The notes below the pieces were generated by a model. The model had not been told where the DNA came from. It saw only the letters and a list, made by a program, of their open reading frames with translations, and did no database searches. Below, piece after piece: positions 20,256 to 57,933 of a stretch of DNA of 64,000 bases. How positions within the stretch are numbered: position 1 is the stretch's first letter; each line of letters opens with the position of its first letter. A program made the position numbers and the translations under genes. Where the stretch lies: positions 186,001 through 250,000 of IMG/VR virus record IMGVR_UViG_3300020122_000238. One strand, written 5' to 3'.

Positions 20256-20444
20256 ATGCCGTATAGGGCGACCCGAGAATTCTACTACTCGCTGATGCTC
20301 GGCGACATCACGGTATACAAAGACGACATCGTATCGGACTGGGAAGTGAAAGAGTACAATCTGGAGGACGCCATCAAGCAGGGTTGGCTCATCTCATCCG
20401 AGCCCCCTACTTGGCAAGAGCGCTTGCTCGCGGACGACATATGA
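20256..20444 (+). CDS. small paralogue 2 with C-terminal tag
   Basis: MPYRAT...AIKQGWL...PTWQERLLADDI. Confidence 0.7.
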   Translation: MPYRATREFYYSLMLGDITVYKDDIVSDWEVKEYNLEDAIKQGWLISSEPPTWQERLLADDI

Positions 20445-20638
20445 AGTACCGCGCTTTGAGCCCGTTCATAATGGGTCCCTTCACAGACCCTTTATCGTTG
20501 AGCAAGGGGTCTGTGGTGAGCACAGAGGACTTCGCGAAGTACCCGTACCTGACGCATGCCCTGAAGCAGGGGTATCTGGAGGAAATCCCTGAGCCGAAGG
20601 TCTTGACATGGCACGACCACCTCATGGAAGACGACTGA
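20441..20638 (+). CDS. small paralogue 3 with C-terminal tag
   Basis: MKYRAL...ALKQGYL...LTWHDHLMEDD. Confidence 0.7.
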   Translation: MKYRALSPFIMGPFTDPLSLSKGSVVSTEDFAKYPYLTHALKQGYLEEIPEPKVLTWHDHLMEDD

Positions 20639-23895: not shown

Positions 23896-24855
23896 ATGGG
23901 CGGATCCAGCTACAGCGAAGACTTCTACCATGCCCGAGCCAAAGAGCGCGAACGTACGAAGACCCCGACCTTCGCACACAGCGTGACGACGGCCACGAAG
24001 CCGGCCCACGAGCAGCGTACGCACGCACTGCTCGACCCCAAGAACAAGCTCATCCGCGAGTCGCGCGATTCGAAGGCTCATCCCGAGTCCCTCGCCGTCG
24101 CCGTGATGTTTGACGTGACGGGCTCGATGGCGGCGACTCCGACGGTCTTCCAGACCAAGCTTCCGCGGCTGATGAACCTCCTCACGGCGACCGGCGTCCA
24201 GCACCCGCAGCTCCTCTTCGGATGCGTCGGTGACGCGGTCTCCGACAAGGGCTCGATTCAGATCGGCGAGTTCGAGTCCGGCAACGAGATGGACGAGACC
24301 TTCAGCCACGTCTGGCTGGAAGGTCATGGTGGCGGCACGAACCAGGAGAGCTACCAGAACGCGCTCTACTTCTTCGCCCGGCACACGCAGATCGACTGCG
24401 TCGAGAAGCGCAACAAGAAGGGCTACCTCTTCTTGCTCGGTGACGAGGAGGCCTACCCCGTGGTGCGCCGACGGGAAGTCGAGGCGCTCTTCGGCGAGAC
24501 GATCCAGGAGGATATCTCGCTGGAGAACATCATTGCGGAAGCCCACGACAAGTACAACGTCTTCTTCGTCATCCCGGCCGAGACGCAGGGAGGGCGGAAC
24601 CCGGCGATCCGCAACTACTGGGTCGACCGCTTCGACGAAACCCACGTTCTCAACCTGACCTCCGCCGAGGGCGTGGCCGAAACGATCGCCCTCACCGTGG
24701 GGCTCTGCGAAGGGACGACCAACCTCGACGCGGCTCGCCAGGACCTCGTGACCGCGGGTGTCTCGACCAAGCTGATCAACGACACCATCGCCAGCCTGAC
24801 GCCCCTCGCTGAGAGCCTCGGCAAGGCCAGCACCAGCTCGACCATCCGGCTCTAG
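23896..24855 (+). CDS. vWA-like protein of the type linked to PurA-like genes
   Basis: FDVTGSM, VGDA..D, EGHGGG..ESY, ARHT.IDC.EKR.KKGYLF..GDE. Confidence 0.85.
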   Translation: MGGSSYSEDFYHARAKERERTKTPTFAHSVTTATKPAHEQRTHALLDPKNKLIRESRDSKAHPESLAVAVMFDVTGSMAATPTVFQTKLPRLMNLLTATGVQHPQLLFGCVGDAVSDKGSIQIGEFESGNEMDETFSHVWLEGHGGGTNQESYQNALYFFARHTQIDCVEKRNKKGYLFLLGDEEAYPVVRRREVEALFGETIQEDISLENIIAEAHDKYNVFFVIPAETQGGRNPAIRNYWVDRFDETHVLNLTSAEGVAETIALTVGLCEGTTNLDAARQDLVTAGVSTKLINDTIASLTPLAESLGKASTSSTIRL

Positions 24856-26861: not shown

Positions 26862-27106
26862 TCATGGGACGCCTGGTAGTTACCGTGAGGGGAGAATGCG
26901 AGCACCACAAGCGACGCGGACATCTACTGTGATGTCCGCGTCGCTTGTGGTGCAACGATCCTCCGCGTCGAGATGATAGGGGACTACCCCTCCACGGGCG
27001 CCCACATCTACGTGAAGTGCCAAAAATCTCCCGCCGAGCTGTCCGCGGCTATCGACGCTGCGGACGAGATCCCGCAATATTCAATCAGGACGGAAGTAGA
27101 GCGAAA

Positions 27107-28423
27107 ATGAGTAACGTAATCCTGATCGCGGGCCTCAACTACGGAGATGAGGGCAAGGGGACGACCGTCGACTACCTCGCTCGGAAGCACGAAGCGCACA
27201 CGGTCGTCCGCTACAACGGCGGAGCCCAAGCAGGCCATTCGGTGGTCCTGGAGGATGATCGGCACCACACCTTCGCCCAGTTCGGGAGCGCCACCTTCGT
27301 CCCTGGGGTGAAGACGCACCTCAGCCGGCACATGCTCATCAACCCGATCTTCATGATGTCTGAGGAGAAGCACCTCCGCACTGTCGGCGTCGAGGATGCC
27401 TTCGAACGGATGACCATCGAACGGGATGCGCTGATCACGACTCCCTACCATGTCGCCGCGAATCGCATCCGGGAGATGGCTCGCTCAAACCGCCACGGAT
27501 CTTGTGGGATGGGAATCGGCGAGACGGTGAGCAGTCACCTGTTCCACCCTCAAGAGGATCTCCGGATTGGGGATCTGGAAGGGCCAATCACCGCGCGATT
27601 GGAGCAGATCCGAGCGCGGTATTTGTGGGAGCTGGCTACTCTGCACATTCCCGAGTGCAAGTTCCGCGACTACGATTGCATCTGCCCGTTCAAGCATGAA
27701 TGGGGCATGCTCTTGAACAAGAGCCTTCTCCCCTTGATTGTGGGGTTGCTCACGGGATTTCTCAAGCTCCCGCTCAAGGTTGTCGATGAGACCTACCTCC
27801 CGCTCATCATGGGGGAAGGGACCACGATCTTCGAGGGTGCTCAGGGTGTCCTCCTTGATCAGGACTACGGGTTCCACCCCTACACGACCTGGTCCGACAC
27901 GACCTTCAGCAACGCCCTCAACCTGATCGAAGGCTTCTCTGGAGACGTAAGGAAGATCGGGATCGTTCGATCCTACATGACCCGGCACGGGGCGGGCCCA
28001 TTCGTCACGGAAGATGTCACCCTCCAGCTCCCCTCCACGAAGGTTGAGCACAACTCGCTCAATCCCTGGCAATCGAATTTCCGGGTGGGGCATTTCGACG
28101 CCTTCGCGACCAATTACGCCCTCAAGGTGATTGGGGGTGTCGACGAGATCGCCATGACACACTGCGATGTGCCAAGTAGTGGTAAAATTTGTGTTGGATA
28201 CAGGGGAGAGTTTACCCCCGAAGTGCTTCAGGATATGCCGCATGTGAAGCATATTCGTGAAGACCTCGACGTTCGTACGGGTATCACAAATGCTCTTTTC
28301 AATGTCTTTCCGGTGTACTTGACCGATGTGGCAGAGAAGGATTTCATCCCCAAAATTGAAGATTTCGTGGGGACTCCCATCACCATCAAGTCGTACGGCC
28401 CCACGGCCAAGGACAAGCGATAA
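27107..28423 (+). CDS. divergent adenylosuccinate synthetase (PurA)-like ligase
   Basis: GDEGKG, GGAQAGH, EGAQGVLLD, TRHGAGPF and SYGP are present; the aspartate-binding TTGRxR loop is replaced by HNSLNPWQSNFR. Confidence 0.85.
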   Translation: MSNVILIAGLNYGDEGKGTTVDYLARKHEAHTVVRYNGGAQAGHSVVLEDDRHHTFAQFGSATFVPGVKTHLSRHMLINPIFMMSEEKHLRTVGVEDAFERMTIERDALITTPYHVAANRIREMARSNRHGSCGMGIGETVSSHLFHPQEDLRIGDLEGPITARLEQIRARYLWELATLHIPECKFRDYDCICPFKHEWGMLLNKSLLPLIVGLLTGFLKLPLKVVDETYLPLIMGEGTTIFEGAQGVLLDQDYGFHPYTTWSDTTFSNALNLIEGFSGDVRKIGIVRSYMTRHGAGPFVTEDVTLQLPSTKVEHNSLNPWQSNFRVGHFDAFATNYALKVIGGVDEIAMTHCDVPSSGKICVGYRGEFTPEVLQDMPHVKHIREDLDVRTGITNALFNVFPVYLTDVAEKDFIPKIEDFVGTPITIKSYGPTAKDKR

Positions 28424-29337
28424 TGGACCCCATCAAGATCATCCTCCCGCCCACCAGGCCCAAGCACGCGACGAACGCGTGGGAAGCCCTCATGGCGGAT
28501 GATGATGGTATCCTTGAGGGTGATACCGCGACCTTCACCTTCGACACGAAGGTTGCGGAAGGGGACCTCTGCGACATCTACCGAGGCACCTACAACGGCC
28601 GCCCGGCGGCTTTGAAGGTGTCCCATGGGGTCGACGTCAACGACCTCGTCGAGCATGAGGCGGACGTCATCCGGCACCTCTTCCCCGCAGAAGAGGCGAA
28701 CGTCGGGTTCCTCCGCTACCTCTCCAAGCTCAGCTACTCCTTCCATGACGAACGGGAGGGAAAGCGGATCAACGTCTTCCCCTGGCTCGGAGAACATGTC
28801 TCCGTCGCCGACATCCTGAAGGCGTATCCAGGCGGCATCGAGTACCAAAACATGGTCTGGATGTTCAAGCGTGGACTGGAAGGCCTCGGATACGTTCACG
28901 AAAAGAACGTCATTCACGGTGCGGTCCTCCCCCCGCATCTGCTGATCCATCCGGCCGACCACGGGGCCAAGCTGATCGACTGGTCCTACGCCGTCCTCAA
29001 CGCGGACGCACGACGGAACAAGGTCCGGGCCATGTCCGCACCCTGGAGGTCCTTCTATGCCCCCGAGATTCCCGGGAAAGGGATCCCGACGGCGGCGACG
29101 GATATCTACATGCTGGCCAAGTGCATGGTCGCTCTGCAAGGCGGGGACGTCACCACGGACGCGATGCCGGATACGACCCCAGAGCCCATTCAGAGGTTCT
29201 TGAGGGAGTGCCTGTCTCCCATGCAGCACCTTCGGCCGAACAGCGCATGGGATCTCGTCGAGGAGTTCAACGCGCTTCTTCGCTCCGTGATCGGCCCGCC
29301 GAAATACTTCAAGTTCGAGATGTCCCCCAAGGTGTAA
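28423..29337 (+). CDS. Ser/Thr kinase-fold protein lacking the catalytic HRD Asp (pseudokinase-like)
   Basis: AALKV and EHE kept; HGAVLPPH replaces HRDLKPEN; DWS replaces DFG; coupled to the PurA-like gene. Confidence 0.75.
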   Translation: MDPIKIILPPTRPKHATNAWEALMADDDGILEGDTATFTFDTKVAEGDLCDIYRGTYNGRPAALKVSHGVDVNDLVEHEADVIRHLFPAEEANVGFLRYLSKLSYSFHDEREGKRINVFPWLGEHVSVADILKAYPGGIEYQNMVWMFKRGLEGLGYVHEKNVIHGAVLPPHLLIHPADHGAKLIDWSYAVLNADARRNKVRAMSAPWRSFYAPEIPGKGIPTAATDIYMLAKCMVALQGGDVTTDAMPDTTPEPIQRFLRECLSPMQHLRPNSAWDLVEEFNALLRSVIGPPKYFKFEMSPKV

Positions 29338-29897: not shown

Positions 29898-30599
29898 ATG
29901 GGACGTCCTGCCACAGACCTGACGGATTTCAGGTCTGGTAAACTAACAGCCACACATCGAGAAGGGAGCACTGCTCAAGGAGCTGCTCTCTGGTTCTGCC
30001 GTTGCGATTGCGGGGAATTCGTACTCGTTCGAGGCACCAAGCTCAAATCAGGACAGATACAATCCTGTGGGTGCGGGATGCGTGAGTACCAAAACAGCCC
30101 AAAAGACTGGGAGATTCACGGTCAGGCGGGCACCCCAAAACGCAAGCCCACATCACTTTACAACACCTGGACCCTGATGCGATCCAGGTGTTGTAAAGTG
30201 AGAAACCCTGACTATCCGTCATATGGCGGGCGGGGGGTACAAGTGTGTGAAAGATGGCTAAATAGCTTCACGGCTTTCCAAGAAGATATGGGGCCGAAGC
30301 CGGGAGCCTCATACACAATCGATCGTATCGATGTCAACGGGAACTACACCCCCGAAAATTGTAGGTGGGCCACACGTAAAGAACAGGCGAGAAACCGCCG
30401 AGATAATGTCTTTGTGTCTTACGAAGGTGAGACGCTGTGCCTCACAAACTGGTCCGAACGTTTCGGGGTTGCAGCTAGAGACATCAAACGAAGGCTGTAC
30501 TTGGGCTGGTCTATTGAGCGAGCCCTGAGAGAACCTTCTCGTATGCTACCCAAGAGGCGACATGGTGACTCCGAAAGAAGTGGGCTGGGGATCGTATAA
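29898..30599 (+). CDS. free-standing HNH homing endonuclease
   Basis: WFCRCDCG, SCGC, YGGRGVQVCERW, TIDRIDVNGNYTPENCRWAT..EQARN; AT-richer than flanks. Confidence 0.85.
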   Translation: MGRPATDLTDFRSGKLTATHREGSTAQGAALWFCRCDCGEFVLVRGTKLKSGQIQSCGCGMREYQNSPKDWEIHGQAGTPKRKPTSLYNTWTLMRSRCCKVRNPDYPSYGGRGVQVCERWLNSFTAFQEDMGPKPGASYTIDRIDVNGNYTPENCRWATRKEQARNRRDNVFVSYEGETLCLTNWSERFGVAARDIKRRLYLGWSIERALREPSRMLPKRRHGDSERSGLGIV

Positions 30600-31689
30600 A
30601 TCCTATGAAGGACCGATTTGGCTCGGTCGCGATACCCCCTACAAGATGCCCGACGCCCCTACAAGTGCGGAGAAAGTGATGACTGTCATCACAAGTACGG
30701 AAGGGGGGTCCTTCTCAGCGATCAACATGTACGACCGCATGGTTATTTCATGCGGCATTTTGCAGTGGGGCGAGGCAGGCCAGTACAGCGTCTCCGATAT
30801 GATCGGGGCCATCGTTGACCAGGCAGGGGGCTTCCCGAAGCCTTTCCAAACCCAGCTCTCCAACGTCGACATCAACTTCGAGAAGAACGCCAAGGGGCGC
30901 TGGAGGTTCTTCTTCCGGGACTTCCGAGGTGAGGTCGACCGTCTCGGAGAGCAGAAGCAGCTCTTCTTGCTCCGCTCGAATGGCCTGAAGGGGACATGGG
31001 ACGAGGGCTCCAAGGAGTACGCCAAGAGCTGGGCAGCGGCTATCGCGAGCACCCTGGCACTCCCCGAGGCGCAGAAGGTCCAGGTTGCCTTCACGGTCCC
31101 GAAACTCTTGAGCTTCATCACGCCCGAGGCCCATGCGATCCTTTGGGAAGGGTCTCTCACGACGGACGCATCCGCCATGTCTTCTGGCTGGATCGGGGCT
31201 CTCCGTTCGGCCTACCTTTCCTTCGCCGCCAATCTCCCCATGGTCGCAAGCAACCAGCTCAAGATCGCGGTCGCGAAGTCAAAGGCTCCGAAGTGGTCCT
31301 CGGACTGGTGCATCGACATCTTGAAGCAGCTCACCTTTGGGCCGCAGATCACGATCTACCCGGTCCGCTACAACGGGATCCGGCCGGTCATTGAGCGGAT
31401 CTACGGTGTGGACCTACCTGACTTCGCTGCGGATCTCCAGGCATGGAGCGCGAAGCTGGGGATCGACCCGACGGATTCGATGCCTCCTTTCCTGACCCCG
31501 AAAGAGATTCAGATGGAGCTGATCGCAGAGGGTTATGACCTCGGGCCGGCGGGAGCTGATGGGCGGATTGGGGTCAAGACCACGGATGCCTTGTTTGCAT
31601 TCCAGGCAATACACGGGCTCAAGGTCGACGGAATCATCGGACCCATGACCCGCAAGGCTCTTCTGGCCGAGTGGCAGCGGCGGAACTAG
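30562..31689 (+). CDS. putative endolysin: lysozyme-like N-domain plus C-terminal PG_binding_1 domain
   Basis: C-terminal IQMEL..GYDLGPAGADG.IG.KT.DAL.AFQ..HGL.VDGIIGP.T; N-terminal EGGS.SAINMYD...SCGILQW. Confidence 0.7.
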   Translation: MVTPKEVGWGSYKSYEGPIWLGRDTPYKMPDAPTSAEKVMTVITSTEGGSFSAINMYDRMVISCGILQWGEAGQYSVSDMIGAIVDQAGGFPKPFQTQLSNVDINFEKNAKGRWRFFFRDFRGEVDRLGEQKQLFLLRSNGLKGTWDEGSKEYAKSWAAAIASTLALPEAQKVQVAFTVPKLLSFITPEAHAILWEGSLTTDASAMSSGWIGALRSAYLSFAANLPMVASNQLKIAVAKSKAPKWSSDWCIDILKQLTFGPQITIYPVRYNGIRPVIERIYGVDLPDFAADLQAWSAKLGIDPTDSMPPFLTPKEIQMELIAEGYDLGPAGADGRIGVKTTDALFAFQAIHGLKVDGIIGPMTRKALLAEWQRRN

Positions 31690-33213: not shown

Positions 33214-34029
33214 ATGTATGACGATGCCTCGCTGGACGATTACTGGGCCATGTTGCGGCCCCCCGAGCCCATGCCGTCCCCTGTGATCTCCCTTGAGACC
33301 GCTACCGAATGGCTGAAAACCATTGGGGCTCCGAGACATTCTCCCCTCTTGGTAGTCCCTGGTACATCTGTGGAGCGTTGCAGCGTTTTTCGGGCTCTGG
33401 GGAAAGTCGTGGACAGCACCTACTTCGAGTGCGACCTGGAAAACGCCTCCTGGTTAGAGGTGGGTCTCGACACGACCATCGCAGCTCTCGTCTCCTGTCA
33501 GGACCTCGATCTGGAGGGCACCATTCGAACGATGGCTGACACGTCCCATTACCTGGAGCATGACGTGTACCGGATTCTCTGGGAAATTCGGTTCTTGCGT
33601 CGTGAAGATCGGCATCAAGCGGACGAGCTGTTCGATATCTTCCGGCGATTGGTCCGTGACACACAACTTCGAGAACATGAGGTTCGGAGGCTCCGGGACC
33701 TTGGCATCTCGAAGTTCATCTTCTCTTTCCGGGAGAAAGTGGAAGTGCTGTGCTTCCTCCGCACCCTCGCCTCTCAGAACGAAATCCCGAGTCGCCTGGT
33801 TCTTTCTTTCGACGGGTTGGACCAGGCCATACAAGCTGAGAACAAGGGGGTTCTTCGCCAGCTCGTGATGCTCATCTCTGAAGTCCGACGTTGGACGCTA
33901 ATCACCAGTTGCCCGATTGGCATCCTCCTGGGTTTTTCAGCGGCCCGAAGTAATACCGCAAAACTCCGCAAGCTCAATCAGAATCTCACCGCCGAAATGG
34001 AGGCCGGGCTCGCCTGGACCAAGTCATGA
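33214..34029 (+). CDS. hypothetical protein with N-terminal acidic-YW-Pro tag
   Basis: MYDDASLDDYWAMLRPPEP; GGTGTA 10 nt upstream. Confidence 0.7.
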   Translation: MYDDASLDDYWAMLRPPEPMPSPVISLETATEWLKTIGAPRHSPLLVVPGTSVERCSVFRALGKVVDSTYFECDLENASWLEVGLDTTIAALVSCQDLDLEGTIRTMADTSHYLEHDVYRILWEIRFLRREDRHQADELFDIFRRLVRDTQLREHEVRRLRDLGISKFIFSFREKVEVLCFLRTLASQNEIPSRLVLSFDGLDQAIQAENKGVLRQLVMLISEVRRWTLITSCPIGILLGFSAARSNTAKLRKLNQNLTAEMEAGLAWTKS

Positions 34030-34535
34030 TCCGGATCAATTTCACTTGCGATGTTGTCGAACTCGAACCGCTCAACACTGACGAGTACGACGGCCTGCTC
34101 ATGGTGATCTCCACAGCCACCACCCCGATTGGAGGGAATGACCAGGTGAAACATCAGGATACGGCGACGGGGGAATGGGACGACATCCCTGTTTCTGCGG
34201 GGGCCCGCTCAACAGGGGGGTTGGTCTTCCGGGAGCGGCAAGTCACTCTGCCGGGGAAGTACCTGATCCGCTCCGCGATCCGCAATGGGAAAGAGCCCTT
34301 CAGGACTTTCGACCTCTTCCTCGAACATCTGGGAGACCGAAATGCCCGCCTCACGGTCGAGCCTGGAAGCACCCTTGCGTTCTGGATCATGGGCAACTTC
34401 GACCCGATCTTGATCGGTGCAGAGCGTACGATCATTCACATCGAGAATGGGCAAATCACGTTGATCGACACAGGGAAGCCGAGCGATCAGCGCCGTCCGA
34501 CCGCCTGGGAGAAAATGGACGACGACGACATCTAG
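34026..34535 (+). CDS. hypothetical protein with C-terminal tag
   Basis: ends PTAWEKMDDDDI. Confidence 0.7.
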   Translation: MIRINFTCDVVELEPLNTDEYDGLLMVISTATTPIGGNDQVKHQDTATGEWDDIPVSAGARSTGGLVFRERQVTLPGKYLIRSAIRNGKEPFRTFDLFLEHLGDRNARLTVEPGSTLAFWIMGNFDPILIGAERTIIHIENGQITLIDTGKPSDQRRPTAWEKMDDDDI

Positions 34536-34556
34536 CTCTTGGTGTCCATAGAAGGG

Positions 34557-35159
34557 ATGCCCCCTCGTCACCATCAACTAGACCCCCAAAGTGGAATGGG
34601 TATGAGCCCTCCGCACTGCCTCGTCTGTCGGGCCAGCTTCAACCCCAACGAGCCGCTCACCTCATGCGACCATATCTCGATCGACGACCTGAAGATCCAG
34701 ACAGTCTACGACATCGACATGGACGAGAAGCCCATCGGCATGGGGCTCTCGGGGGAGTGCTTCAACCTGAAGTGCCCCGACTGCAAGCAGACCTTCATGC
34801 AGCTCCGCAAGTCCATGCACGGGCTCTTCTATGGGTGCCCTTCCTACCCCGCGTGCAAGGGCACTCACGGGGCCAATGCGGACGGCGCTCCGAAGGGCAT
34901 CCCTGGAGACTTCGCGACCCGTCAGGCCCGTATAGCGGTTCACCTGGTCTTCGATCGTATATGGAATCAACCTGGCTCCAACCTGACCCGAATCCAGGCC
35001 TATACCTGGATGGCTTGGGAAATGAGGCTGGGAATCATGGAAGCCCATATCGCACGCTTCGACATTGAAATGTGCGAGAAGCTCGTCTCCCTGGTGAAAA
35101 AACACTTCGGGGTCACGAACGCGTGGGAAGCCATCCTCGACGACTCCATCTGGGATTGA
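34557..35159 (+). CDS. zinc-finger protein (topoisomerase Zn-ribbon/DUF3268-like) with C-terminal tag
   Basis: CPDC...FYGCPSYPAC.GTHGA..DG.P.G.P...TRQAR..VH..FD.IW; ends TNAWEAILDDSIWD. Confidence 0.75.
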   Translation: MPPRHHQLDPQSGMGMSPPHCLVCRASFNPNEPLTSCDHISIDDLKIQTVYDIDMDEKPIGMGLSGECFNLKCPDCKQTFMQLRKSMHGLFYGCPSYPACKGTHGANADGAPKGIPGDFATRQARIAVHLVFDRIWNQPGSNLTRIQAYTWMAWEMRLGIMEAHIARFDIEMCEKLVSLVKKHFGVTNAWEAILDDSIWD

Positions 35160-35183: not shown

Positions 35184-35408
35184 ATGGGTCCCCCAACAGC
35201 GTTTGCCGGGGGTTCATTTTGCGCCCGCGGACCCATGCGTCTTATCGACGGACCCTACGGCCGGTTCTACGGCTGCAAGCACTGGCCTGACTGTGTGTCT
35301 CGAATTCCGGCCGAGTATGACGGTACGCCGAAGTACCCGAAAAAGAAGCTGCCCCGAAGTCATTCGCGGGGCAGCTTCTTTCGGACGACTTCGACTAGTC
35401 GTTGGTGA
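35184..35408 (+). CDS. degenerate topoisomerase-type Zn-ribbon ORF
   Basis: PMRLIDGPYGRFYGCKHWPDC; the first Cys pair is incomplete. Confidence 0.4.
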   Translation: MGPPTAFAGGSFCARGPMRLIDGPYGRFYGCKHWPDCVSRIPAEYDGTPKYPKKKLPRSHSRGSFFRTTSTSRW

Positions 35409-35841
35409 CGGTCTCGACCGTCCAGTAAGGCGGGAGGGGCTCGGCGATCCGAGCGGCCATGGCCTGGACGACGTCCAGGGGAGTTCCGTGCAGGTTCCGA
35501 GCTGCCGCCTTCTCGACAGAGCACTCGATGCGCAGGATGGCCGCCTCGTACCCGAAGGCCGAAGCCGCGAGCATGTAAGGCGCGATCTCGGCAACCGACG
35601 TGTTCGTGTTGTCGACGACGATGAGACTCCAGTCGGCCTCCAACGCAATGAGGAATCTCTTGAAGCACCTTCCGTGCGCTTCCCCGATCTTGGTGGGATC
35701 GAACTCATACTCCCCCGCCTCGTTGACCATGAATTGGTCGGTGGAGACGATGACCGCCTGGTTGACACCCTCGACCAGCTTTTTTGCAATCGTGGACTTC
35801 CCCGATCCCGACAGACCTTGCAAAACGATAACCTTCGGCAT
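35395..35841 (-). CDS. AAA_33/polynucleotide-kinase-like P-loop protein
   Basis: GLSGSGKST, VSTDQF, IVVDNTN. Confidence 0.8.
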   Translation of the reverse strand: MPKVIVLQGLSGSGKSTIAKKLVEGVNQAVIVSTDQFMVNEAGEYEFDPTKIGEAHGRCFKRFLIALEADWSLIVVDNTNTSVAEIAPYMLAASAFGYEAAILRIECSVEKAAARNLHGTPLDVVQAMAARIAEPLPPYWTVETVTND

Positions 35842-35850
35842 GTGTACATC

Positions 35851-35876
35851 TACACAGGAAGAGGGAGGGGGATCAA
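35851..35876 (-). promoter_or_regulatory. class I motif TTGATC-N16-TGTA
   Basis: 9 nt upstream of ATG 35841; one of a divergent pair. Confidence 0.75.
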
Positions 35877-35891
35877 CCATATTTTCCCTGG

Positions 35892-35927: not shown

Positions 35928-37253
35928 ATGACGGCCACCCAAATGCACTTTCGGATCGATGGGGACGACTTCACTCGCATCGCCAGGGATTTCTTTCTGG
36001 AGGAGCGCCCTGATGCTGCGTGGCGCTTCATCACGGAAGGCCTGATGGGTGGTGAGCCAGGACAAGCCGAGCACTACGCCAAGCTCATCCTCAACGGAAA
36101 GACCAAGCTCATCGGCAACGAGACCGTGGGGCTGGAGCCGGTCGACGATGACGCGGCTGACTTTCAAAAGCAGGCCCGGTACATCTACGCCGGGCGCATC
36201 CGTAAAGAGGGCCGATGGTGGCGGCCGAGAGCCAAGGTCACGAACTTCGGCCCCGAGGATTGGCCGAAGGGAGCTGTGGCAGGTGATCAAGCCACCACGG
36301 CAGGCAAGGCGCATCTCCACGAGATCGGACGTCAGCGCGTCGCCCACTACGAGCTCAAGGACGAGCGCGTCTTCGATGTCGAAGGGGATTCCCTCATCTT
36401 CGAGCCGTGTGGAGAGCCACCGCATTGGTGGCCGGTTAACCGCACGACCGATGCCGCCCTCAAGGATTTCTTGGCCGCCGGGCGCAAGCTGGAGCTGGAT
36501 GGCTGGTCGCGTCGCTACCAGGTCCGTACCAAGAAGATCACCCCGCCGCCCCTCACGGACGACGAAAAGAGGGCCATTGCTGCCAAGCGGGCCAAGGAAG
36601 ACGAGGAAGATCGGAAGAAGATTGCAGCCTTCTCGATGAAGTGCACCATCATCGGGGCTCAGGTGGTGCTCCAAGCCGGCGAGGACACGTTCGACATGCC
36701 CTTGGAGGACGGGACGACGATCAAGGTCCCGCGGGCTCCGTTCGAAAACTGGGCCCTCCGGAACACGTCGCTGAGCCACCTCGCCCCGGCGTGGCAACCA
36801 ATATCCACGCCGGGGATGAAGATGCCGGGGGACGATGTCTTCCACACGGACTGGGTTCTCGGGGCCCAGCAGACGCTCAAGTCGGCCTATGAGGGCCCGG
36901 TCAAGGATGCCTCCTGGACTGCACGGTTCGATCTGCAACGGAAGCTGGGCAACTGGGAGTGTGGTGTCGTCGTCTCGGGGGAAGATGTGACGGGTGTGGT
37001 CGGCAAGGGCATCCTTGTGCTGTCCGACCTCGACCCCAAGAACCTCGAAGCCGTGATGAAGTCGAAAGCCGTCATCACGCAAGCGGGAGGGAGGCTCGCG
37101 CACCTGGCTCTGGTGGCCATGGAGCACTGCGTCCCGATCCTGCTTGTCCCCGACGCTCTGACCCGATACCCCAAGGGGGCGAAGTTGACCCTCTCGCCGA
37201 AAGACGGGAAGATCCACACGAGGGAGATCGGGGCCATCTACGACTGCGGTTGA
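35928..37253 (+). CDS. hypothetical protein with C-terminal PEP-utilising enzyme mobile (phospho-His swivel) domain
   Basis: KAVITQAGGRLAHLALVAMEHCVPIL matches the TxxGGxxxH..IVA.E..IP signature. Confidence 0.75.
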   Translation: MTATQMHFRIDGDDFTRIARDFFLEERPDAAWRFITEGLMGGEPGQAEHYAKLILNGKTKLIGNETVGLEPVDDDAADFQKQARYIYAGRIRKEGRWWRPRAKVTNFGPEDWPKGAVAGDQATTAGKAHLHEIGRQRVAHYELKDERVFDVEGDSLIFEPCGEPPHWWPVNRTTDAALKDFLAAGRKLELDGWSRRYQVRTKKITPPPLTDDEKRAIAAKRAKEDEEDRKKIAAFSMKCTIIGAQVVLQAGEDTFDMPLEDGTTIKVPRAPFENWALRNTSLSHLAPAWQPISTPGMKMPGDDVFHTDWVLGAQQTLKSAYEGPVKDASWTARFDLQRKLGNWECGVVVSGEDVTGVVGKGILVLSDLDPKNLEAVMKSKAVITQAGGRLAHLALVAMEHCVPILLVPDALTRYPKGAKLTLSPKDGKIHTREIGAIYDCG

Positions 37254-45164: not shown

Positions 45165-45647
45165 ATGCCTAAGCTCGACAAGAAACTCCGCCTGGAAGTC
45201 GCACAGACCGTGCTCGATGGGGGGTCCGTCCTCTTCCTCACTCCGAACTCAGAAATGAATGACCGGGTTGCGGACCTCTTCAGGAAGGCATTCGTGGAGA
45301 ACGCCATGGATGTCACAGGCTGCGCGGAACTCACCGCCCGCAAGCTCATGAAGCCCGAAGGCGCAAATCCGAGCTATGTCCAGCTCGCGAAAGGCCCCGG
45401 GCATGCCTTCTTCCACCCGAACCAGGACATGACCGCCGACGAAGAGATCGGGAACCCCACCTTCGTCTACTGGCCGACCGAGGGCGGGGACTACCAGAAG
45501 GTGCCCTATAACACATGGAAGCGAGAGCGTCGGGCTCACCTCTGGCGGCCGGTTCACCTGAAGGGACAGCTCCTTTGGGAAGACACGCCGGCTGTGATTG
45601 CGGGCCCGTCGAATGCGTGGGCCAAGATCCTGGAGGATGACCTGTGA
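45165..45647 (+). CDS. hypothetical protein with C-terminal tag
   Basis: ends SNAWAKILEDDL; GGTGTA 45146-45151. Confidence 0.75.
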   Translation: MPKLDKKLRLEVAQTVLDGGSVLFLTPNSEMNDRVADLFRKAFVENAMDVTGCAELTARKLMKPEGANPSYVQLAKGPGHAFFHPNQDMTADEEIGNPTFVYWPTEGGDYQKVPYNTWKRERRAHLWRPVHLKGQLLWEDTPAVIAGPSNAWAKILEDDL

Positions 45648-45880
45648 CCCCAAGCGAGATGAAGCTGGCGGGCATTCTCCTGGAGATGGCGGCCGACGAG
45701 TTCGGCAATCACAGCTGCAACGACTTCAAGTTGCCACCGATGCCGGAGACAGCCGTGCTCACCCTCCTCACGGAGTACTACGCCCCGGATCCGATCCCTG
45801 AGCTTCAGAGCCCCATCCTCAACGACGCCATCCTCATGTCGATGATGGCCAAGAAGCTCCTGGTGGATGCCGGGCCATGA
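45644..45880 (+). CDS. hypothetical protein
   Basis: GTGA and ATGA coupling on both sides. Confidence 0.65.
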   Translation: MTPSEMKLAGILLEMAADEFGNHSCNDFKLPPMPETAVLTLLTEYYAPDPIPELQSPILNDAILMSMMAKKLLVDAGP

Positions 45881-46302
45881 GCACGACGGCATGGGACCTG
45901 ATCCTGAACGATTTCGATGAAATCGAAGACCGGATCACGGCGGCCTGCCTCGCCTGCAAAGCCCGAGGGATTGTTGTCCAGTCTGGCGACTGGGGCGTCA
46001 CCTATGACGAAGACACCCACAAGTGGGTCCAGGGTACACCTTGGCGGGAGAGCACCTCTCTCCCTGTGAATCTCCTCGGCGCCTTGTTGCTCATCGAGAA
46101 CCCTTTCCCCGAGATGTACGTGTACGAGAACCGCACATGTTACGCGCCCACCGACACGGTGAGTAGACTTTTGGGCGTTGGGATCGCCTGGACTCTCTCA
46201 TTCTTCGCGGGGTGGGATGCAGCTCGGTTCCCCTCTTCGGGAGTCAGGACCGCCTATGACTTCGGGCAGCGGTTGGCAACAGAGATTTCATGTCCTCTGT
46301 GA
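45877..46302 (+). CDS. hypothetical protein carrying the tag at its N-terminus
   Basis: starts MSTTAWDLILNDFDE. Confidence 0.65.
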   Translation: MSTTAWDLILNDFDEIEDRITAACLACKARGIVVQSGDWGVTYDEDTHKWVQGTPWRESTSLPVNLLGALLLIENPFPEMYVYENRTCYAPTDTVSRLLGVGIAWTLSFFAGWDAARFPSSGVRTAYDFGQRLATEISCPL

Positions 46303-48010: not shown

Positions 48011-48406
48011 TCAGTCCTCCAGGATGGCATCCCAAACCGTGGGACCCTTCAAAGAATGAAACTGGTTGATAAAGTTTACCCATGAAGTAATTCGGAATTG
48101 TCTTGAATCATCGTGACTATAAGACAGCCAGCCATTTTTGATGGTCATAACGGAGACCATGTTTTTAAAATGTGTGGGATCCTTGTCTACAAAAACGGCG
48201 TCATGGTGTACCCAATGAGGAACGGGGGTGCCTTCATATTTCGGATGGAAAGGCGACCAAAAACGCTCAACTCTCTCAAGAGAAGTACATCCTGGTCGAC
48301 TCTCCCCCACGGCCAAAAGCCAGAGCCCATTGTCCGAGAAAGCCACGACCTCCGCCCAATACCCGGGCCCCTCAAGTTCCAACCAATCCCCAATTTCGTA
48401 GGCCAT
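48011..48406 (-). CDS. hypothetical protein with C-terminal tag (AT-richer)
   Basis: MAYEIGDW... ends PTVWDAILED; GGTGTA (48416-48421) 9 nt upstream. Confidence 0.65.
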   Translation of the reverse strand: MAYEIGDWLELEGPGYWAEVVAFSDNGLWLLAVGESRPGCTSLERVERFWSPFHPKYEGTPVPHWVHHDAVFVDKDPTHFKNMVSVMTIKNGWLSYSHDDSRQFRITSWVNFINQFHSLKGPTVWDAILED

Positions 48407-48421
48407 ACAAGAGATTACACC

Positions 48422-48748
48422 ATGAAGTGGAACGTCGACAAAGCCCTGACCGACTTGGCGAAGTGGGCGAGCGATCGGGACACCTTGGCGGGCATCTCGC
48501 AGGTCTACGTGGACGCTTCGAGGGCGACAGAGGTTGGGGTGCATCCGACCCCGCCCGAGACGAAGAAGGGGGTCGTCTACGTCTGGAAGGTGTACCTGCT
48601 CGCCGGGATGAACATCCACAGTTTCTACGGCCGGACGATTCAGGAGGCCTACCACAAGGCTCGCCGGATGCTTCGGCCCCCGGTCGGCAAGTCGACCAAG
48701 AAGAAGGTTGATCGGTTCAAACGTCGGCGTGTAGGACACGAGCAATGA
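48422..48748 (+). CDS. hypothetical protein
   Basis: MKWNVDKAL...; GC3 bias. Confidence 0.6.
   Translation: MKWNVDKALTDLAKWASDRDTLAGISQVYVDASRATEVGVHPTPPETKKGVVYVWKVYLLAGMNIHSFYGRTIQEAYHKARRMLRPPVGKSTKKKVDRFKRRRVGHEQ
48708..48733 (+). promoter_or_regulatory. class I motif TTGATC-N16-TGTA
   Basis: 11 nt upstream of ATG 48745. Confidence 0.7.
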
Positions 48749-49348: not shown

Positions 49349-49684
49349 CTACGATGCTCTTGAGCCATTCGACCGCGGAATCAACAGCGGGCAAACCCGG
49401 CGGGCGTGGTGGAAAGCCACGCCATTTTCTCTAGAACTCCTCGTCGAGCCTCTCCCACCCCGTGAGATACGGGAGTTTCGGTGGGGTGAGTGGCGGGGTT
49501 CAGGATTGGAGCAAGGCTCCACAAGAATCGAACCTACCCCGATTGGGAAGTAGGTTGCTATCTCCTTCGAACAACGCGTGCAGATGTAGAAGTGCTTTGC
49601 CCAAAGCCCAATCGCACCGGACTCAACCTGAGTCCGGTGCGATTGGGGGCAAAAGAGGTGCCCAGCGTTATACGTCGTCGCCAT
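49349..49684 (-). CDS. possible Zn-ribbon protein containing an internal palindrome
   Basis: FCPQ...YICTRC; overlaps the stop of the upstream gene. Confidence 0.4.
   Translation of the reverse strand: MATTYNAGHLFCPQSHRTQVESGAIGLWAKHFYICTRCSKEIATYFPIGVGSILVEPCSNPEPRHSPHRNSRISRGGRGSTRSSRENGVAFHHARRVCPLLIPRSNGSRAS
49607..49647. repeat. perfect 19-bp inverted repeat
   Basis: CCCAATCGCACCGGACTCA-ACC-TGAGTCCGGTGCGATTGGG. Confidence 0.9.
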
Positions 49685-50033
49685 CAAGATGCTCCCAAAC
49701 CGTGGGGTTGGTCTCTGGCAGCTTCGGTTGAGCTTGCGCCATCGGGGGCAGAGTTGTTCTCAGAACGAGGCTCAGAAGCTCTGAATCACCCCGCGGTCGA
49801 GCTTGTGCCTGAAGCTGGGCTCGTAGCTCCCTGCGTTCTCGGATGATCCTCTCCAGGACCTCGACGGAGTTCTCGTCGCTGTCTTCCGCGTACCTTTGCA
49901 GACGTTCCGTGAGCTGCTTGAGGAGGACTGCATCTTCAGACTCCGTGTGAACGTAGGCAAGGAGCTTGCCTACGCCAATTGCTATCGCAATGAGCAGCAC
50001 CGCGAGACCAAGGGTAACAATGAAAGCGATCAT
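49668..50033 (-). CDS. membrane-anchored coiled-coil protein with C-terminal tag
   Basis: N-terminal TM; ends PTVWEHLDGDDV. Confidence 0.7.
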   Translation of the reverse strand: MIAFIVTLGLAVLLIAIAIGVGKLLAYVHTESEDAVLLKQLTERLQRYAEDSDENSVEVLERIIRERRELRAQLQAQARPRGDSELLSLVLRTTLPPMAQAQPKLPETNPTVWEHLDGDDV

Positions 50034-53608: not shown

Positions 53609-54240
53609 GCGGTACCCATGAAAATCTCATGGGGCAGGTCTTCGGTCGCCTCACGGTAATCGCGGGCCCGACCCATAAACGTGGGCGCACAGCCTGGATG
53701 TGTCTGTGCTCATGCAGCAAACGAAACTCTTTTATCGTTTGCTCGAAAGAGTTGAAGATGGGGCAGTCCACCTCATGCGGTTGCATCAAGGATGAGCTTC
53801 ATCGCGTCCGCCTCGCAACACATGGGATGTCCGAAACCCCTGAATACCGTGCCTGGCAGCTCATCAAGAACAGATGTGGAAACCCCAAGGCAAGAGAGTA
53901 CCTCTACTACGGGGGACGGGGAATCAAGCTATACGACGCCTGGCAGACCTCCTTTGTGCTATTCCACACACATCTTGGGCCAAGACCCTCACCCCTACAT
54001 TCTGTGGATCGGCATCCCGACATGAATGGGGACTATGCACCTGGTAACGTTCGATGGGCAACCTCCAAAGAGCAGAACAGAAATCGTAGAAACAACGTAC
54101 TAATCGTAGTTGGCGGGCGCACAATAACGTTGGCACAGGCTGCCGAAGAAGCTGGCCTCCCTTACGGTCTGGTGTATCGAAGATTCGTCAGAGATAAATT
54201 TACACCTGAATTGACTCTCAAACCTCCTGGACGAAAATGA
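53605..54240 (+). CDS. free-standing HNH homing endonuclease
   Basis: WMCLCSC, SCGC, YGGRGI, SVDR...NGDYAPGNVRWAT.KEQNRN; paralogue of 29898; ATGA-coupled on both sides. Confidence 0.85.
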   Translation: MSGTHENLMGQVFGRLTVIAGPTHKRGRTAWMCLCSCSKRNSFIVCSKELKMGQSTSCGCIKDELHRVRLATHGMSETPEYRAWQLIKNRCGNPKAREYLYYGGRGIKLYDAWQTSFVLFHTHLGPRPSPLHSVDRHPDMNGDYAPGNVRWATSKEQNRNRRNNVLIVVGGRTITLAQAAEEAGLPYGLVYRRFVRDKFTPELTLKPPGRK

Positions 54241-54797
54241 AACGCTGGGATCCTGACATCGAGGATTACATCGACGAGACGAATGGCGAGGAGCCGGATA
54301 TCGAAGACGATATCCGCTTCAAGCTCGATATGGTCGAGATGATCCGTACCGAGTTGGGAGACAAGAAAGCAGCTTTGGCTCAAACCACGCTGAAGATCCC
54401 CGAGCTGGACTATTCTATGTCCTTCCACGTCGGGATGTGGCTGCGCCATGCTGAAGACGAAGTAACCAGAGTTCGTCTCGAAATATTGGAGGTTCGAGAC
54501 GAAACCTGTCTCGTCTACTGCGTCGGGTGGGAGGAGCCGACTGAGAAAACAAAGAAGATACTCTGTTGGTATAGAATATCTGAACCCCCCTCGACGGCTC
54601 TGCCATCTTGGGTGAAGCCGGGTGCGTACTTCGGCAGCAATTCTCGCAACAGATGGTGCATTCTTACCATCAAAGAGGGCATGTTCACAGCGAAGCGTAC
54701 ACGCGATCAGTACTTCGCCACCTGGACATCAGAGGACCTGTTCGACGAGTGCCGTCCCATCCTCACGGCATGGGAACAGCTCGACGACTTGGGATAG
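54237..54797 (+). CDS. hypothetical protein with C-terminal tag
   Basis: acidic N-terminus; ends LTAWEQLDDLG. Confidence 0.7.
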   Translation: MKRWDPDIEDYIDETNGEEPDIEDDIRFKLDMVEMIRTELGDKKAALAQTTLKIPELDYSMSFHVGMWLRHAEDEVTRVRLEILEVRDETCLVYCVGWEEPTEKTKKILCWYRISEPPSTALPSWVKPGAYFGSNSRNRWCILTIKEGMFTAKRTRDQYFATWTSEDLFDECRPILTAWEQLDDLG

Positions 54798-55114: not shown

Positions 55115-55687
55115 ATGTTGACGAAGAAGATCCTGACGGCGACGAAGCATTACCTGAGCAAGACCCCCGAAGAGAACCGCGCCTATGGCCTGGTTACGGA
55201 TGGGAAGATCAACCCCGGCACCTTCCGCTTCATGCCGGTGCTGGCGTGGCTTCGCAAGAAGCCCGAGAGGAGCAGGATTGTCCTCTCGGGCTTCTTGCTG
55301 CGCATGACGGAAGGTGCTTTCGTGGGAGGCCTCGACTGGTCCATCCCGCTGAACCCGGAAACCGAGAACGACGCCGCGAACCTTCTCTCGTCCTTCGGGT
55401 GGGACAATCGAGTGTGGCCTTCAGACCCGGGCTGGCCCGACGATCTGCCGGATGAGGAACACACGCTGCACGGGATGCTCAAGAAGAAGGGCATCTTGGA
55501 GACGCTCACGTTCCCGCCGAAGGAATCGGGCAACAGGGTGATGACGCTTCATGTGCTGAAGGTGTCGAACCCCTTCCCGCTGCCGATCCTGGTTGCTGAT
55601 GAAGACCGTCAGGAGGTGGCCCCCGAGATGCTCTCGAAACTTCGAGAGCTGGTCGCCGACCCGAGCTGCTTCTCGCTGTCCTCCTAG
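55115..55687 (+). CDS. hypothetical protein
   Basis: 190 aa; GGTGTA (55099-55104) 10 nt upstream. Confidence 0.75.
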   Translation: MLTKKILTATKHYLSKTPEENRAYGLVTDGKINPGTFRFMPVLAWLRKKPERSRIVLSGFLLRMTEGAFVGGLDWSIPLNPETENDAANLLSSFGWDNRVWPSDPGWPDDLPDEEHTLHGMLKKKGILETLTFPPKESGNRVMTLHVLKVSNPFPLPILVADEDRQEVAPEMLSKLRELVADPSCFSLSS

Positions 55688-56277
55688 TCGTCCGCGAGAA
55701 GGTGCCCCCACGCGTTGTCAGGTCTACCTTTGGGCCCTCTCGTCCGAAGCAACCTGACAATGGGGAGATCGGCTGCCGCAGCCAGGGAATCATCCAGCTC
55801 CCTGGTTGCGATGGAGCACTGGTCGATGTGGTGCGCGGGATTTGAGATGTCCCGCACCGTGATGAGCCACACCCCCTTCTTCTTCTGAATGTAGACCCCA
55901 GCCCGCCAGGTGTTCATGACCTTCGTGTTGGGGTCTTGGGCTCCCGTGGCGACATCGAATGGCTCTGGGATCAAAGCCATCGTGTTCTCCGTCTCACGGT
56001 AGAGATGTTTCCCGAAGGGCCGTCGCGTGTACTCCGTGCTGATCTGGTTCAGCGGAATTTGAGTCTCATGGCAGACAGTATCCCACCGCGTAAGAATTCC
56101 CCCAGGCACGAGAGTGGTGATTGGCCCTGTAGTTCTTGACCCGTGGGGGGTCGTCAGGTCAGGCCGCCAGGTCACGATCCCATCAACCTCGGAGGTCTTC
56201 AGCGATCGAATCACAACATGACCGGGGCACATGTCCCCCAAAATCATGACAGGCTTCTGCATCAGGACAAGGATCAT
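55684..56277 (-). CDS. hypothetical protein with C-terminal tag
   Basis: ends DNAWGHLLADD; GGTGTA 10 nt upstream. Confidence 0.65.
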   Translation of the reverse strand: MILVLMQKPVMILGDMCPGHVVIRSLKTSEVDGIVTWRPDLTTPHGSRTTGPITTLVPGGILTRWDTVCHETQIPLNQISTEYTRRPFGKHLYRETENTMALIPEPFDVATGAQDPNTKVMNTWRAGVYIQKKKGVWLITVRDISNPAHHIDQCSIATRELDDSLAAAADLPIVRLLRTRGPKGRPDNAWGHLLADD

Positions 56278-56287
56278 CTTGAGGATC

Positions 56288-56301
56288 TACACCGCGGTGT
56301 A
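56288..56301. promoter_or_regulatory. palindromic back-to-back pair of class II motifs
   Basis: TACACCGCGGTGTA; ATGs at 56277 (-) and 56312 (+), each 10 nt away. Confidence 0.75.
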
Positions 56302-56311
56302 CTCTAGCGAC

Positions 56312-57586: not shown

Positions 57587-57908
57587 AATGTGGGCTGGGG
57601 GGCCCCTCTACCCTGACTGGTTGGTCATCAACCAACTCGTTGAGACGACGGCAAGACACCCAGGGATACGACAACAATCAGTCATTACCAGGATCACTGA
57701 CGGGTTGGTGTACGTCCGATCAAATACCGGCATCGGAGATATTTGGTATCGAGCAGAGCACTTCGTGGACGAATGGCGGGTGCTTCATACCCCCCTGAAG
57801 AACGATCTCGCTCCCGAGGACTACAGGTGGGAGCCCAAGCCTGTCGAGCCCCCCAAGCCCGCTCCGACGTGGCATGAGCTCCTCATTGACGATGACTTCG
57901 ACATCTAG
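57576..57908 (+). CDS. hypothetical protein with C-terminal tag
   Basis: ends PTWHELLIDDDFDI. Confidence 0.7.
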   Translation: MPPRMWAGGPLYPDWLVINQLVETTARHPGIRQQSVITRITDGLVYVRSNTGIGDIWYRAEHFVDEWRVLHTPLKNDLAPEDYRWEPKPVEPPKPAPTWHELLIDDDFDI

Positions 57909-57933
57909 TCGAAGTCATCGTCAATGAGGAGCT
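57877..57933. repeat. perfect 26-bp inverted repeat formed by the 3' ends of two convergent genes
   Basis: AGCTCCTCATTGACGATGACTTCGAC-ATCTA-GTCGAAGTCATCGTCAATGAGGAGCT. Confidence 0.95.

Follow-up and report, generated by a model that had tools for sequence, protein, structure and literature searches.

Several described systems use short peptides, or small modules, to bring unrelated proteins to a common partner. The AAA+ unfoldase ClpX reads ssrA-type C-terminal tags, N-terminal motifs and tethering motifs bound by its zinc-finger domain, such as the XB peptide that the adaptor SspB carries on a flexible tail. The J-domain, a folded domain of about 70 residues with an HPD motif, recruits Hsp70. 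Ku-binding motifs, found at the C-terminus, the N-terminus or internal sites of many unrelated factors, are read by the vWA domains of Ku80/Ku70, and the eukaryotic pseudokinase STRAD-alpha docks into MO25 through a WEF motif of three residues at its C-terminus. Encapsulin cargo-loading peptides and the T4 capsid-targeting sequence are terminal portable peptides that sort unrelated cargo to an HK97-fold shell, whereas the acidic C-terminal tip of SSB and the acidic C-tails of T7 gp2.5 and gp4 dock on several partners. Phage-encoded ClpX and J-domain proteins have been noted in jumbo phages, but no substrates or recognition rules are given in the papers that we read (PMC6102473, PMC7824862, PMC12619734).

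Here we analysed a 64,000-nucleotide stretch (the window) of a 275-kb huge-phage record, hereafter G000. About twenty unrelated proteins of this phage carry a short peptide, a predicted helix followed by acidic residues, nearly always at their very ends. A first-pass annotation had reported that this C-terminal-type tag also occurs at two N-termini, one of them that of a pseudokinase, and had inferred that the tag does not need a free C-terminal carboxylate, that it is a docking helix rather than a C-degron, and that it links a PurA-like/pseudokinase module to the tagged protein set.

Results

Tag copies in the window

The reported observation proved correct, with one amendment on the position of the tag in the kinase-fold protein. 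The open reading frame (ORF) of that protein (28423-29337, + strand, 304 aa) has an ATG that overlaps the TAA of the upstream PurA-like gene (TAATG), and its tag corresponds to T17-G29, with the Trp at position 20 (nt 28471-28509, 31.5 bits with the matrix described below). The tag is thus not at a free N-terminus but in a loop between a short predicted strand (residues 4-8) and beta1. The 92%-identical relative keeps it. The second protein, a 141-aa ORF without Pfam or PHROG hit (45877-46302, +), carries the tag at its extreme N-terminus, at residues 3-15 with W6 (nt 45883-45921, 30.7 bits). Its start codon is supported by the overlap of its ATG with the TGA of a 73-codon upstream ORF (45660-45880, +; ATGA), and its orthologue in the related genome G006 has the same N-terminal tag. 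Nucleotides 28471-28488 are identical to nucleotides 35115-35132, and these are the only two copies of this 18-mer in the 275-kb record. Given the identical hexapeptide and the codon usage of this phage, identical codons have a probability of about 0.009.

The other copies in the window are C-terminal. On the + strand, a 169-aa ORF (34026-34535; tag at nt 34497-34532, 33.3 bits) is conserved in L016 and G006. It is followed by a DUF3268/topoisomerase-type zinc-ribbon protein (34539-35159, +; PF11672 and PF01396) whose tag (nt 35115-35156, 32.6 bits) begins with the 18 nucleotides shared with the kinase copy. Its orthologue in G002, another huge-phage genome, carries the Phe-type tag that the G002 kinase also has. 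Further + strand copies belong to ORFs of 186 aa (54237-54797, 24.6 bits) and 266 aa (56231-57031, 31.0 bits), and weaker or degenerate ones to ORFs of 160 aa (45165-45647, 14.6 bits; 18.2 bits in the G006 orthologue) and 84 aa (20384-20638, 14.9 bits; not in the seed set). On the - strand, tags are found in ORFs of 244 aa (48011-48745, 26.3 bits), 121 aa (49668-50033, 29.9 bits) and 238 aa (57905-58621, 35.3 bits, the best score), with a weaker one in an ORF of 197 aa (55684-56277, 17.6 bits; not in the seed set).

Statistics and conservation of the tag

A 13-column matrix built from 14 seed copies gave 17 hits of at least 14 bits in the 338 predicted proteins of the phage, against a mean of 0.05 in residue-shuffled proteomes. 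Fifteen hits lie within 20 residues of a C-terminus, two near an N-terminus and none is internal, and hits outside the seed set are also terminal. In an independent genome, G001, we found 14 hits against 0.15 expected, 12 of them C-terminal (binomial P 8e-11). The tag is conserved as protein rather than as DNA, since synonymous codons differ among all copies other than the pair sharing 18 nucleotides, and the carriers are not paralogues of each other. It is also conserved in orthologues at 30-45% identity and in phages of different GC content. A megablast against the phage collection found nothing.

The tag consists of about 13 residues: usually Pro, then a helix N-cap (Thr, Ser or Asn), a small residue, Trp (Phe or Tyr in some lineages), Asp or Glu, any residue, two aliphatic residues and an acidic run. 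Its last residues vary. The idea that the conserved Thr is a phospho-acceptor in a CK2-like site was rejected because that position is often Asn or Ser; it fits a helix N-cap with Asp or Glu three residues on, i.e. a capping box.

The tag recurs on unrelated proteins in six other huge-phage genomes: G001 (16 tagged ORFs besides the kinase), G003 (11 others), G006 (about 20), G002 and G013 (a Phe variant shared by the kinase and two to four other proteins) and G033 (six C-terminal copies in the 400 of 529 kb scanned). In each of these genomes that has the kinase, the latter carries that genome's tag variant. Outside the kinase, the tags are almost always within 7-16 residues of a protein end. 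No copies were found in the complete phage G005, the only tag-negative genome scanned in full, or in about 1.2 Mb of bacterial loci.

The kinase-fold protein and its tag

The 304-aa protein is predicted to have a kinase fold, as its AlphaFold (AF2) model has a pLDDT of 90 and the top 50 Foldseek matches listed are all protein kinases (E down to 4e-13). It matches phrog_3043 (1.8e-35), but its score with Pfam Pkinase (PF00069) is 27.4 bits, below the gathering threshold of 31.7. The beta3 Lys (K65), the alphaC Glu (E79) and the DFG-type Asp (D186) are invariant in the family, but the HRD Asp is replaced (HGA) and the catalytic-loop Lys and Asn are lost, the family consensus being H-G-A-(V/I)-L-P-P-H. 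The protein is thus an atypical kinase or a pseudokinase.

It had been set beforehand that finding the same N-terminal sequence in chromosomal homologues, as part of the fold, would refute the first-pass interpretation; none of the 40 chromosomal homologues checked has the tag. Instead, 25 of them have an N-terminal HPD (J-domain) motif, and PF00226 was confirmed on one. No PF00226 hit was found in the kinase of the window or in the 275-kb record. Of 120 homologues of the kinase, 54 have a J-domain and no tag, 34 have a tag and no J-domain, and three have both (Fisher P 2e-9). Viral homologues without a J-domain carry the tag at three different sites: the N-terminal loop, the beta2-beta3 loop and the activation segment. 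AlphaFold leaves the tag of the window's kinase undocked, with pLDDT below 50 for residues 14-33. The tag is therefore a portable motif and not part of the fold. The C-terminal helix of the kinase itself (around 29233-29270, residues 271-283) also contains A-W-D, but its hydrophobic register differs and its matrix scores are 10.7 bits or less, so we treat this resemblance as superficial.

A conserved triad

The kinase belongs to a triad with a PurA-like enzyme and a vWA-fold protein, the latter being its operon partner. The PurA-like gene (26945-28423, +; likely start near 27107) matches PF00709 at 5e-63, but by the NCBIfam cut-offs its product is neither a PurA equivalog (157 bits against 396) nor PurZ of the 2-aminoadenine pathway (41.5 against 300). 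The product of 23896-24855 (+) has no Pfam hit but matches the bacterial family at 2.4e-133 by hmmsearch. Its AF2 model has a pLDDT of 90, with Foldseek matches to integrin I-domains (probability 1.00) and the Ku80 vWA, and it harbours a MIDAS-like D73-x-T-x-S77 motif in which D73 and S77 are invariant and T75 is conserved in the consensus. The triad is found in bacterial loci, in G002 and G005 and in mycobacteriophage Colt. With a J-domain pseudokinase, it occurs in Myxococcota, Chloroflexota, Micromonospora, Planctomycetota and cultured mycobacteriophages. Our literature searches found no functional study of it; one yielded only a genome announcement naming the PurA-like gene.

Phage-encoded ClpX

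G000 encodes its own ClpX outside the window (G000:163376-164623), a 415-aa protein with a C4 zinc finger, GYVG and LGF loops and a D2-small domain, but lacking the RKH loop. ClpX is present in G000, G001, G002, G003, G004, G006, G007, G008, G009, G010 and G033, thus in all tag-positive genomes with adequate coverage, and absent from G005 and 16 other J-type records, 10 of them complete. No phage ClpP was found.

Discussion

The interpretation made in the first-pass annotation is only partly supported. That the tag works away from a free C-terminus is supported by its position at residues 3-15 of the 45877-46302 product and in three different loops of the kinase family, and these copies, together with the variable last residues, do not fit a C-degron that needs the free alpha-carboxylate. 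The link between the kinase and the tagged set is likewise supported by the shared tag variants. In contrast, 'docking helix rather than degron' is not established, because the tags are almost always terminal, ClpX accepts signals at both ends as well as tethering motifs, and the tag-positive genomes with adequate coverage encode a ClpX. An unfolding or degradation tag thus remains the leading option. Furthermore, the PurA-like/vWA/kinase module appears to be a carrier of the tag rather than its reader.

In our reading, a clade of huge phages appends this peptide to roughly 5% of their proteins, most of them small and without family match, nearly always at the extreme C-terminus, occasionally at the N-terminus, and in the kinase family in surface loops. 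Our analyses show that it is selected at the protein level, sits on unrelated proteins and is not part of the kinase fold, that in this kinase family it is almost mutually exclusive with the J-domain found in cellular and many viral homologues, and that its variant co-varies within a genome, which points to one shared reader per genome evolving with the lineage. What we infer is that the peptide forms a short capped amphipathic helix, with Trp and the two aliphatic residues on one face, followed by an acidic tail, and that its most likely reader is the phage ClpX, which could bind it through its zinc-finger domain, its pore loops or both, and would then unfold, remodel or, with host ClpP, degrade the carriers. 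For the pseudokinase, the tag would replace recruitment of Hsp70 through the J-domain with recruitment of ClpX. We are highly confident that the peptide is a portable shared recognition tag, but the identification of ClpX as its reader, and hence the explanation as a whole, remains tentative.

Like the ClpX signals, the tag is short, portable, predicted to be unstructured in the kinase, and found at either protein end. However, its acidic sequence with a capped Trp helix resembles none of the E. coli ClpX signal classes that we know of, its extreme C-terminal residues are not conserved, the phage ClpX lacks the RKH loop, no phage ClpP was found, and tags in kinase loops would be unusual as threading signals. 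No direct evidence links the tag to ClpX, and their co-occurrence, with only one tag-negative genome scanned in full, is confounded by phylogeny: profiling gave 46 clade-specific candidates, i.e. about 45 other proteins are also in the tag-bearing clade and absent from G005, and ClpX was picked on the basis of known biology, not of statistics.

Alternatively, the tag might connect its carriers to the Hsp70 system by binding host DnaK or DnaJ, or the roughly 400-aa phage J-domain protein found in several of these phages, as a substitute in trans for the J-domain of the kinase family. In that family the tag and the J-domain occupy the same role of appended module, which suggests that both recruit an ATP-driven remodelling machine, although the tag is a 13-residue linear motif with no HPD. 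The C-terminal domain of the phage J-domain protein occurs in G001, G002, G004, G008, G010 and G013 and in none of 10 complete J-type phages, and numbers of J-domain genes and tags run inversely (0 against more than 20 in G000/G006, 2 against 17 in G001, 4 against 5 in G002 and 3 against 0 in G005). Nevertheless, G000 and G006, which together appear to close a circular map of about 365 kb, have the most tags but contain no J-domain protein and no homologue of that C-terminal domain, which argues against this protein as the universal reader. Moreover, acidic peptides are poor DnaK or DnaJ clients, and no phage Hsp70 was found. We consider this possibility unlikely.

Equally unlikely, in our view, is a sorting signal for another conserved phage structure, such as cargo loading into the capsid for co-injection, or recruitment to a second AAA+ protein, of 524 aa (G000:148736-150310). 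The tag is terminal and portable on many small accessory proteins, the system is restricted to one phage clade with genome-specific variants, and the 524-aa protein and many others share this clade-specific distribution. However, no evidence ties any tagged protein to the virion, most tagged genes lie outside the block of large, probably structural, genes, and no sequence similarity to known targeting peptides, encapsulin cargo-loading peptides and the T4 sequence included, is apparent to us.

Slightly less likely still, the reader might be a host hub protein unrelated to chaperones or proteases, such as RNA polymerase, the sliding clamp or partners of SSB, to which the tags would bring phage takeover proteins. 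Acidic tails with a hydrophobic or aromatic end serve this way in SSB and in T7 gp2.5 and gp4, and the genome-specific variants could track different hosts (GC 49-64%). In those proteins, however, the terminal residue and carboxylate are essential, whereas the conserved core here is the upstream capped Trp helix and the motif is also found in loops and at N-termini. No match to the clamp-binding or SSB-tip consensus is apparent to us.

That the triad itself reads the tag, the vWA MIDAS site binding the acidic run or the kinase N-lobe docking the helix as a PIF pocket does, is very unlikely. The intact MIDAS-like motif, the tight linkage of the triad in bacteria and phages, and the tags in kinase loops speak for this idea, in which the MIDAS site would act as the Ku80 vWA domain does on Ku-binding motifs. 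However, G033 has tags and ClpX but no kinase and no vWA homologue, so the Ku analogy is about logic and not about the reader. In STRAD-alpha, too, a pseudokinase carries a short Trp-acid-hydrophobic docking motif outside its fold, and MST3-MO25 with a WIF motif appeared among the kinase fold matches, but the STRAD-alpha motif is not shared by a set of other proteins. Conversely, G005, the bacteria and mycobacteriophage Colt have the triad without tags, and AF2 does not dock the tag on the kinase in cis. A complex prediction with the vWA protein, the kinase domain (residues 34-304), Mg and the last 40 residues of the best-tagged protein, without ClpX, scored 0.00, which we count neither for nor against this reading. 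Finally, chance, a DNA-level repeat at gene boundaries or the conserved tail of one paralogous family, for which only the pair of copies sharing 18 nucleotides could be invoked, is rejected by the hit statistics, the varying synonymous codons, the lack of similarity between carriers outside the tag and the conservation in distant orthologues.

A sequence-defined tag shared by about twenty otherwise unannotatable proteins per genome gives a handle on a large part of the dark proteome of huge phages, a directly testable hypothesis on the role of phage ClpX, and a possible orthogonal tag and reader pair for engineering. It is tempting to speculate, although this remains doubtful on present evidence, that a clade of huge phages runs a private proteostasis code, in which their own ClpX would read an orthogonal tag marking about 5% of the phage proteome for timed unfolding or degradation. 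In this view, the tag would have replaced the J-domain in a pseudokinase/vWA/PurA-like module shared with multicellular-type bacteria and mycobacteriophages, rewiring the module from Hsp70 to ClpX.

Genomic setting

The record analysed here (G000) is a 275,300-bp IMG/VR virus record with 58% GC; positions without a record handle refer to the window (G000:C1:186001-250000). The record encodes ribonucleotide reductase, an NAD-dependent ligase, helicases and a large terminase of 1130 aa, the latter with an extra N-terminal helicase-like region (G000:29680-33072; L002:14680-18069 in the extracted locus). No close relative was found in the phage collection. In contrast, a 93%-identical relative of 350 kb (G006) overlaps the record. 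The two are permuted relative to each other (comparison over loci L184-L201), and together they appear to close a circular map of about 365 kb, in which case the CheckV completeness estimates of 58% and 73% would be too low.

The tag near two N-termini

The first-pass annotation had reported that a tag otherwise of C-terminal type also occurs at the N-termini of a kinase-fold protein and of a second ORF, and that the DNA of the kinase copy is identical over 18 nt to that of another tagged gene. All of these observations hold. The 304-aa kinase-fold ORF (28423-29337) starts at an ATG that overlaps the stop codon of the upstream PurA-like gene, and it has the tag at T17-G29. ORF 45877-46302 has the tag at residues 3-15, its ATG overlaps the stop codon of a small upstream ORF, and its orthologue in G006 keeps the tag. 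Nucleotides 28471-28488 and 35115-35132 are identical, and these are the only two copies in the record. Given the identical hexapeptide, this identity has a codon-usage probability of about 0.009, which hints at a shared recent origin of these two copies. Elsewhere the copies use different synonymous codons, and selection therefore acts on the peptide.

Just downstream of the tagged gene pair, a 441-aa protein with a PEP-utilising mobile domain lies next to a small P-loop protein that looks kinase-like from its sequence (35928-37253 and 35395-35880 (-)). A 375-aa protein with a C-terminal peptidoglycan-binding domain, a probable cell-wall enzyme, is encoded 1.2 kb downstream of the kinase gene (30562-31689).

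Statistical support and sequence pattern

We built a 13-column matrix from 14 seed copies located by their coordinates. It gives 17 hits of at least 14 bits in the predicted proteome, against 0.05 in shuffled proteomes. Of these hits, 15 are within 20 residues of a C-terminus, two are near an N-terminus and none is internal; the hits outside the seed set are also terminal. When all coding-looking ORFs are counted, the record has about 20 copies. The carriers share no similarity outside the tag, and those that were scanned have almost no family matches, the exceptions being the kinase, a DUF3268/zinc-ribbon protein and, in the complete 437-kb genome G001, a radical-SAM enzyme.

The pattern is Pro, followed by an N-cap residue (Thr, Ser or Asn), a small residue, Trp, Asp or Glu, any residue, two aliphatic residues and then an acidic run. 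An N-cap with an acidic residue three positions later is a classic capping box, and we therefore infer a short amphipathic helix with Trp and the aliphatic residues on one face. The kinase family has its own conserved C-terminal helix (Arg-Pro-x-x-Ala-Trp-Asp-Leu...; residues 271-283, 29233-29270), which looks superficially like the tag but has a different hydrophobic register and low matrix scores.

Distribution in other genomes

In G001, the kinase is 42-46% identical and carries the tag in the beta2-beta3 loop, and 16 other ORFs are tagged, nearly all of them at the C-terminus (P 8e-11). In G003, a 252-kb record that is about half complete and of which 240 kb were scanned, the kinase has the tag in the activation segment and 11 other ORFs are tagged. 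In G006, the kinase has the tag as in G000, with about 20 other tagged ORFs. A Phe variant (Thr-Arg-Phe-Asp-Arg-Ile-Leu type) is found in the kinase and in four other ORFs of the complete 407-kb genome G002, as well as in the kinase and two other ORFs of G013, a 145-kb fragment. In contrast, the complete 362-kb genome G005 has a kinase of the J-domain type and no tagged ORF. The DUF3268 orthologue in G002 carries the Phe variant where the window's copy carries the Trp variant. About 1.2 Mb of bacterial loci contain no copy. The co-variation of the variant within each genome argues for one shared reader per genome that evolves with the lineage.

The kinase family

The protein has a canonical kinase fold. 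The HRD Asp and the catalytic-loop Lys and Asn are lost, whereas the beta3 Lys, the alphaC Glu and the DFG-type Asp are invariant. It is an atypical kinase or a pseudokinase. Among 120 homologues, 54 have a J-domain and no tag, 34 have a tag and no J-domain, three have both and 29 have neither (Fisher's exact test, P = 2e-9). The tag occupies three different sites, namely the N-terminal loop, the beta2-beta3 loop and the activation segment. The presence of the same N-terminal sequence in chromosomal homologues, as part of the fold, had been set beforehand as the outcome that would contradict the annotation. This is not what we found, as all 40 chromosomal homologues checked lack the tag, and 25 of them have an HPD (J-domain) motif in the N-terminal region. 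They come from Myxococcota, Chloroflexota, Micromonospora, Planctomycetota and Acidobacteriota. AlphaFold models the domain at pLDDT above 93 but leaves residues 14-33 below 50. The tag is therefore an add-on and not part of the fold.

A conserved triad

In 18 of the 20 bacterial loci compared, the J-domain kinase is followed by a protein of about 330 aa and a PurA-like enzyme. The 330-aa protein has a vWA fold with a MIDAS-like motif. All three genes are in the window, at 23896-24855 (vWA protein), 26945-28423 (PurA-like enzyme) and 28423-29337 (kinase). Kinase and vWA genes are also present in G001, G002 and G005, although BLAST confirmed the PurA-like gene only in G002. In G000 and G002 the gene order is vWA, PurA-like, kinase, and in G001 the vWA gene lies upstream of the kinase gene. 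Mycobacteriophage Colt has a J-domain kinase, a vWA protein and a PurA-like enzyme. The module occurs in chromosomes of Myxococcota, Chloroflexota, Micromonospora and Planctomycetota and in Bixzunavirus mycobacteriophages (loci L053-L115 and L183:4638-8108), and our literature searches found no functional study of it.

The PurA-like gene matches the PHROG named for PurZ-type enzymes. Nevertheless, it is far below the NCBIfam cut-offs for both PurZ (41.5 against 300) and PurA (157 against 396), and by these criteria it is neither. Its annotated TTG start is probably too far upstream, with a likely ATG near 27107.

Candidate readers of the tag

Phylogenetic profiling gave 46 clade-specific proteins, one of which is a full-length ClpX (G000:163376-164623; L011:13376-14620). 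It has a C4 zinc finger, a GYVG pore loop, an LGF loop of the kind that docks ClpP and a D2-small domain, but no RKH loop. ClpX occurs in G000, G001, G002, G003, G006 and five further records (G004, G007, G008, G009 and G010). It is absent from G005 and 16 other J-type records, ten of them complete. It is also present in G033, a complete 529-kb phage with at least six C-terminal tags. In G002, an intein with a LAGLIDADG endonuclease interrupts the gene near the P-loop (G002:280061-282388; L154:61-2385), and the ClpX frame of G004 is similarly enlarged (795 aa). No phage ClpP was found. ClpX-family unfoldases read short peptides at either protein end, as well as tethering motifs through the zinc-finger domain. 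As the tags are overwhelmingly terminal, we rank phage ClpX first among the candidates. This link is an inference from sequence and distribution alone, the co-occurrence is confounded by phylogeny, and the tag is unlike the known E. coli signals. The one complex prediction, made before ClpX had emerged as a candidate, returned no answer.

A second clade-specific AAA+ protein (524 aa, classical AAA domain, phrog_8638; G000:148736-150310, L010:13736-15307) has the same distribution across G000, G001, G002, G003 and G006 and is also absent from G005; it is an alternative candidate. A phage J-domain protein of about 400 aa tracks the tag-bearing clade, to which the family is restricted, but it is missing from G000 and G006. 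Of the members identified, those at L121:1787-2962, L152:12851-14146 and L025:444-1844 share a conserved C-terminal domain that has no family match, whereas the one at L148:17570-18847 shares only the N-terminal J-domain region. Finally, the triad itself is an unlikely reader, as G033 has tags but no kinase and no vWA homologue, and triads also occur without tags.

Proposed mechanism

We propose that the tag is a portable recognition peptide that brings its carriers to a common phage-specific machine, most likely phage ClpX. The carriers would then be unfolded, remodelled or, with host ClpP, degraded. Our analyses establish that the tag is portable, biased towards protein ends, co-variant within genomes, nearly exclusive with the J-domain in the kinase family and independent of the kinase fold. 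In contrast, the helix, the identity of the reader and the fate of the carriers are inferred. The interpretation given in the first-pass annotation is supported in part. Its proposals that the tag does not depend on a free carboxylate and that the kinase is linked to the tagged set are supported. Its preference for docking over a degron is not settled, because a ClpX-type tag can be both.

In this model, the tag takes the place of the J-domain in the pseudokinase, so that the module would be coupled to ClpX instead of Hsp70, and the pseudokinase could be a substrate or an adaptor.
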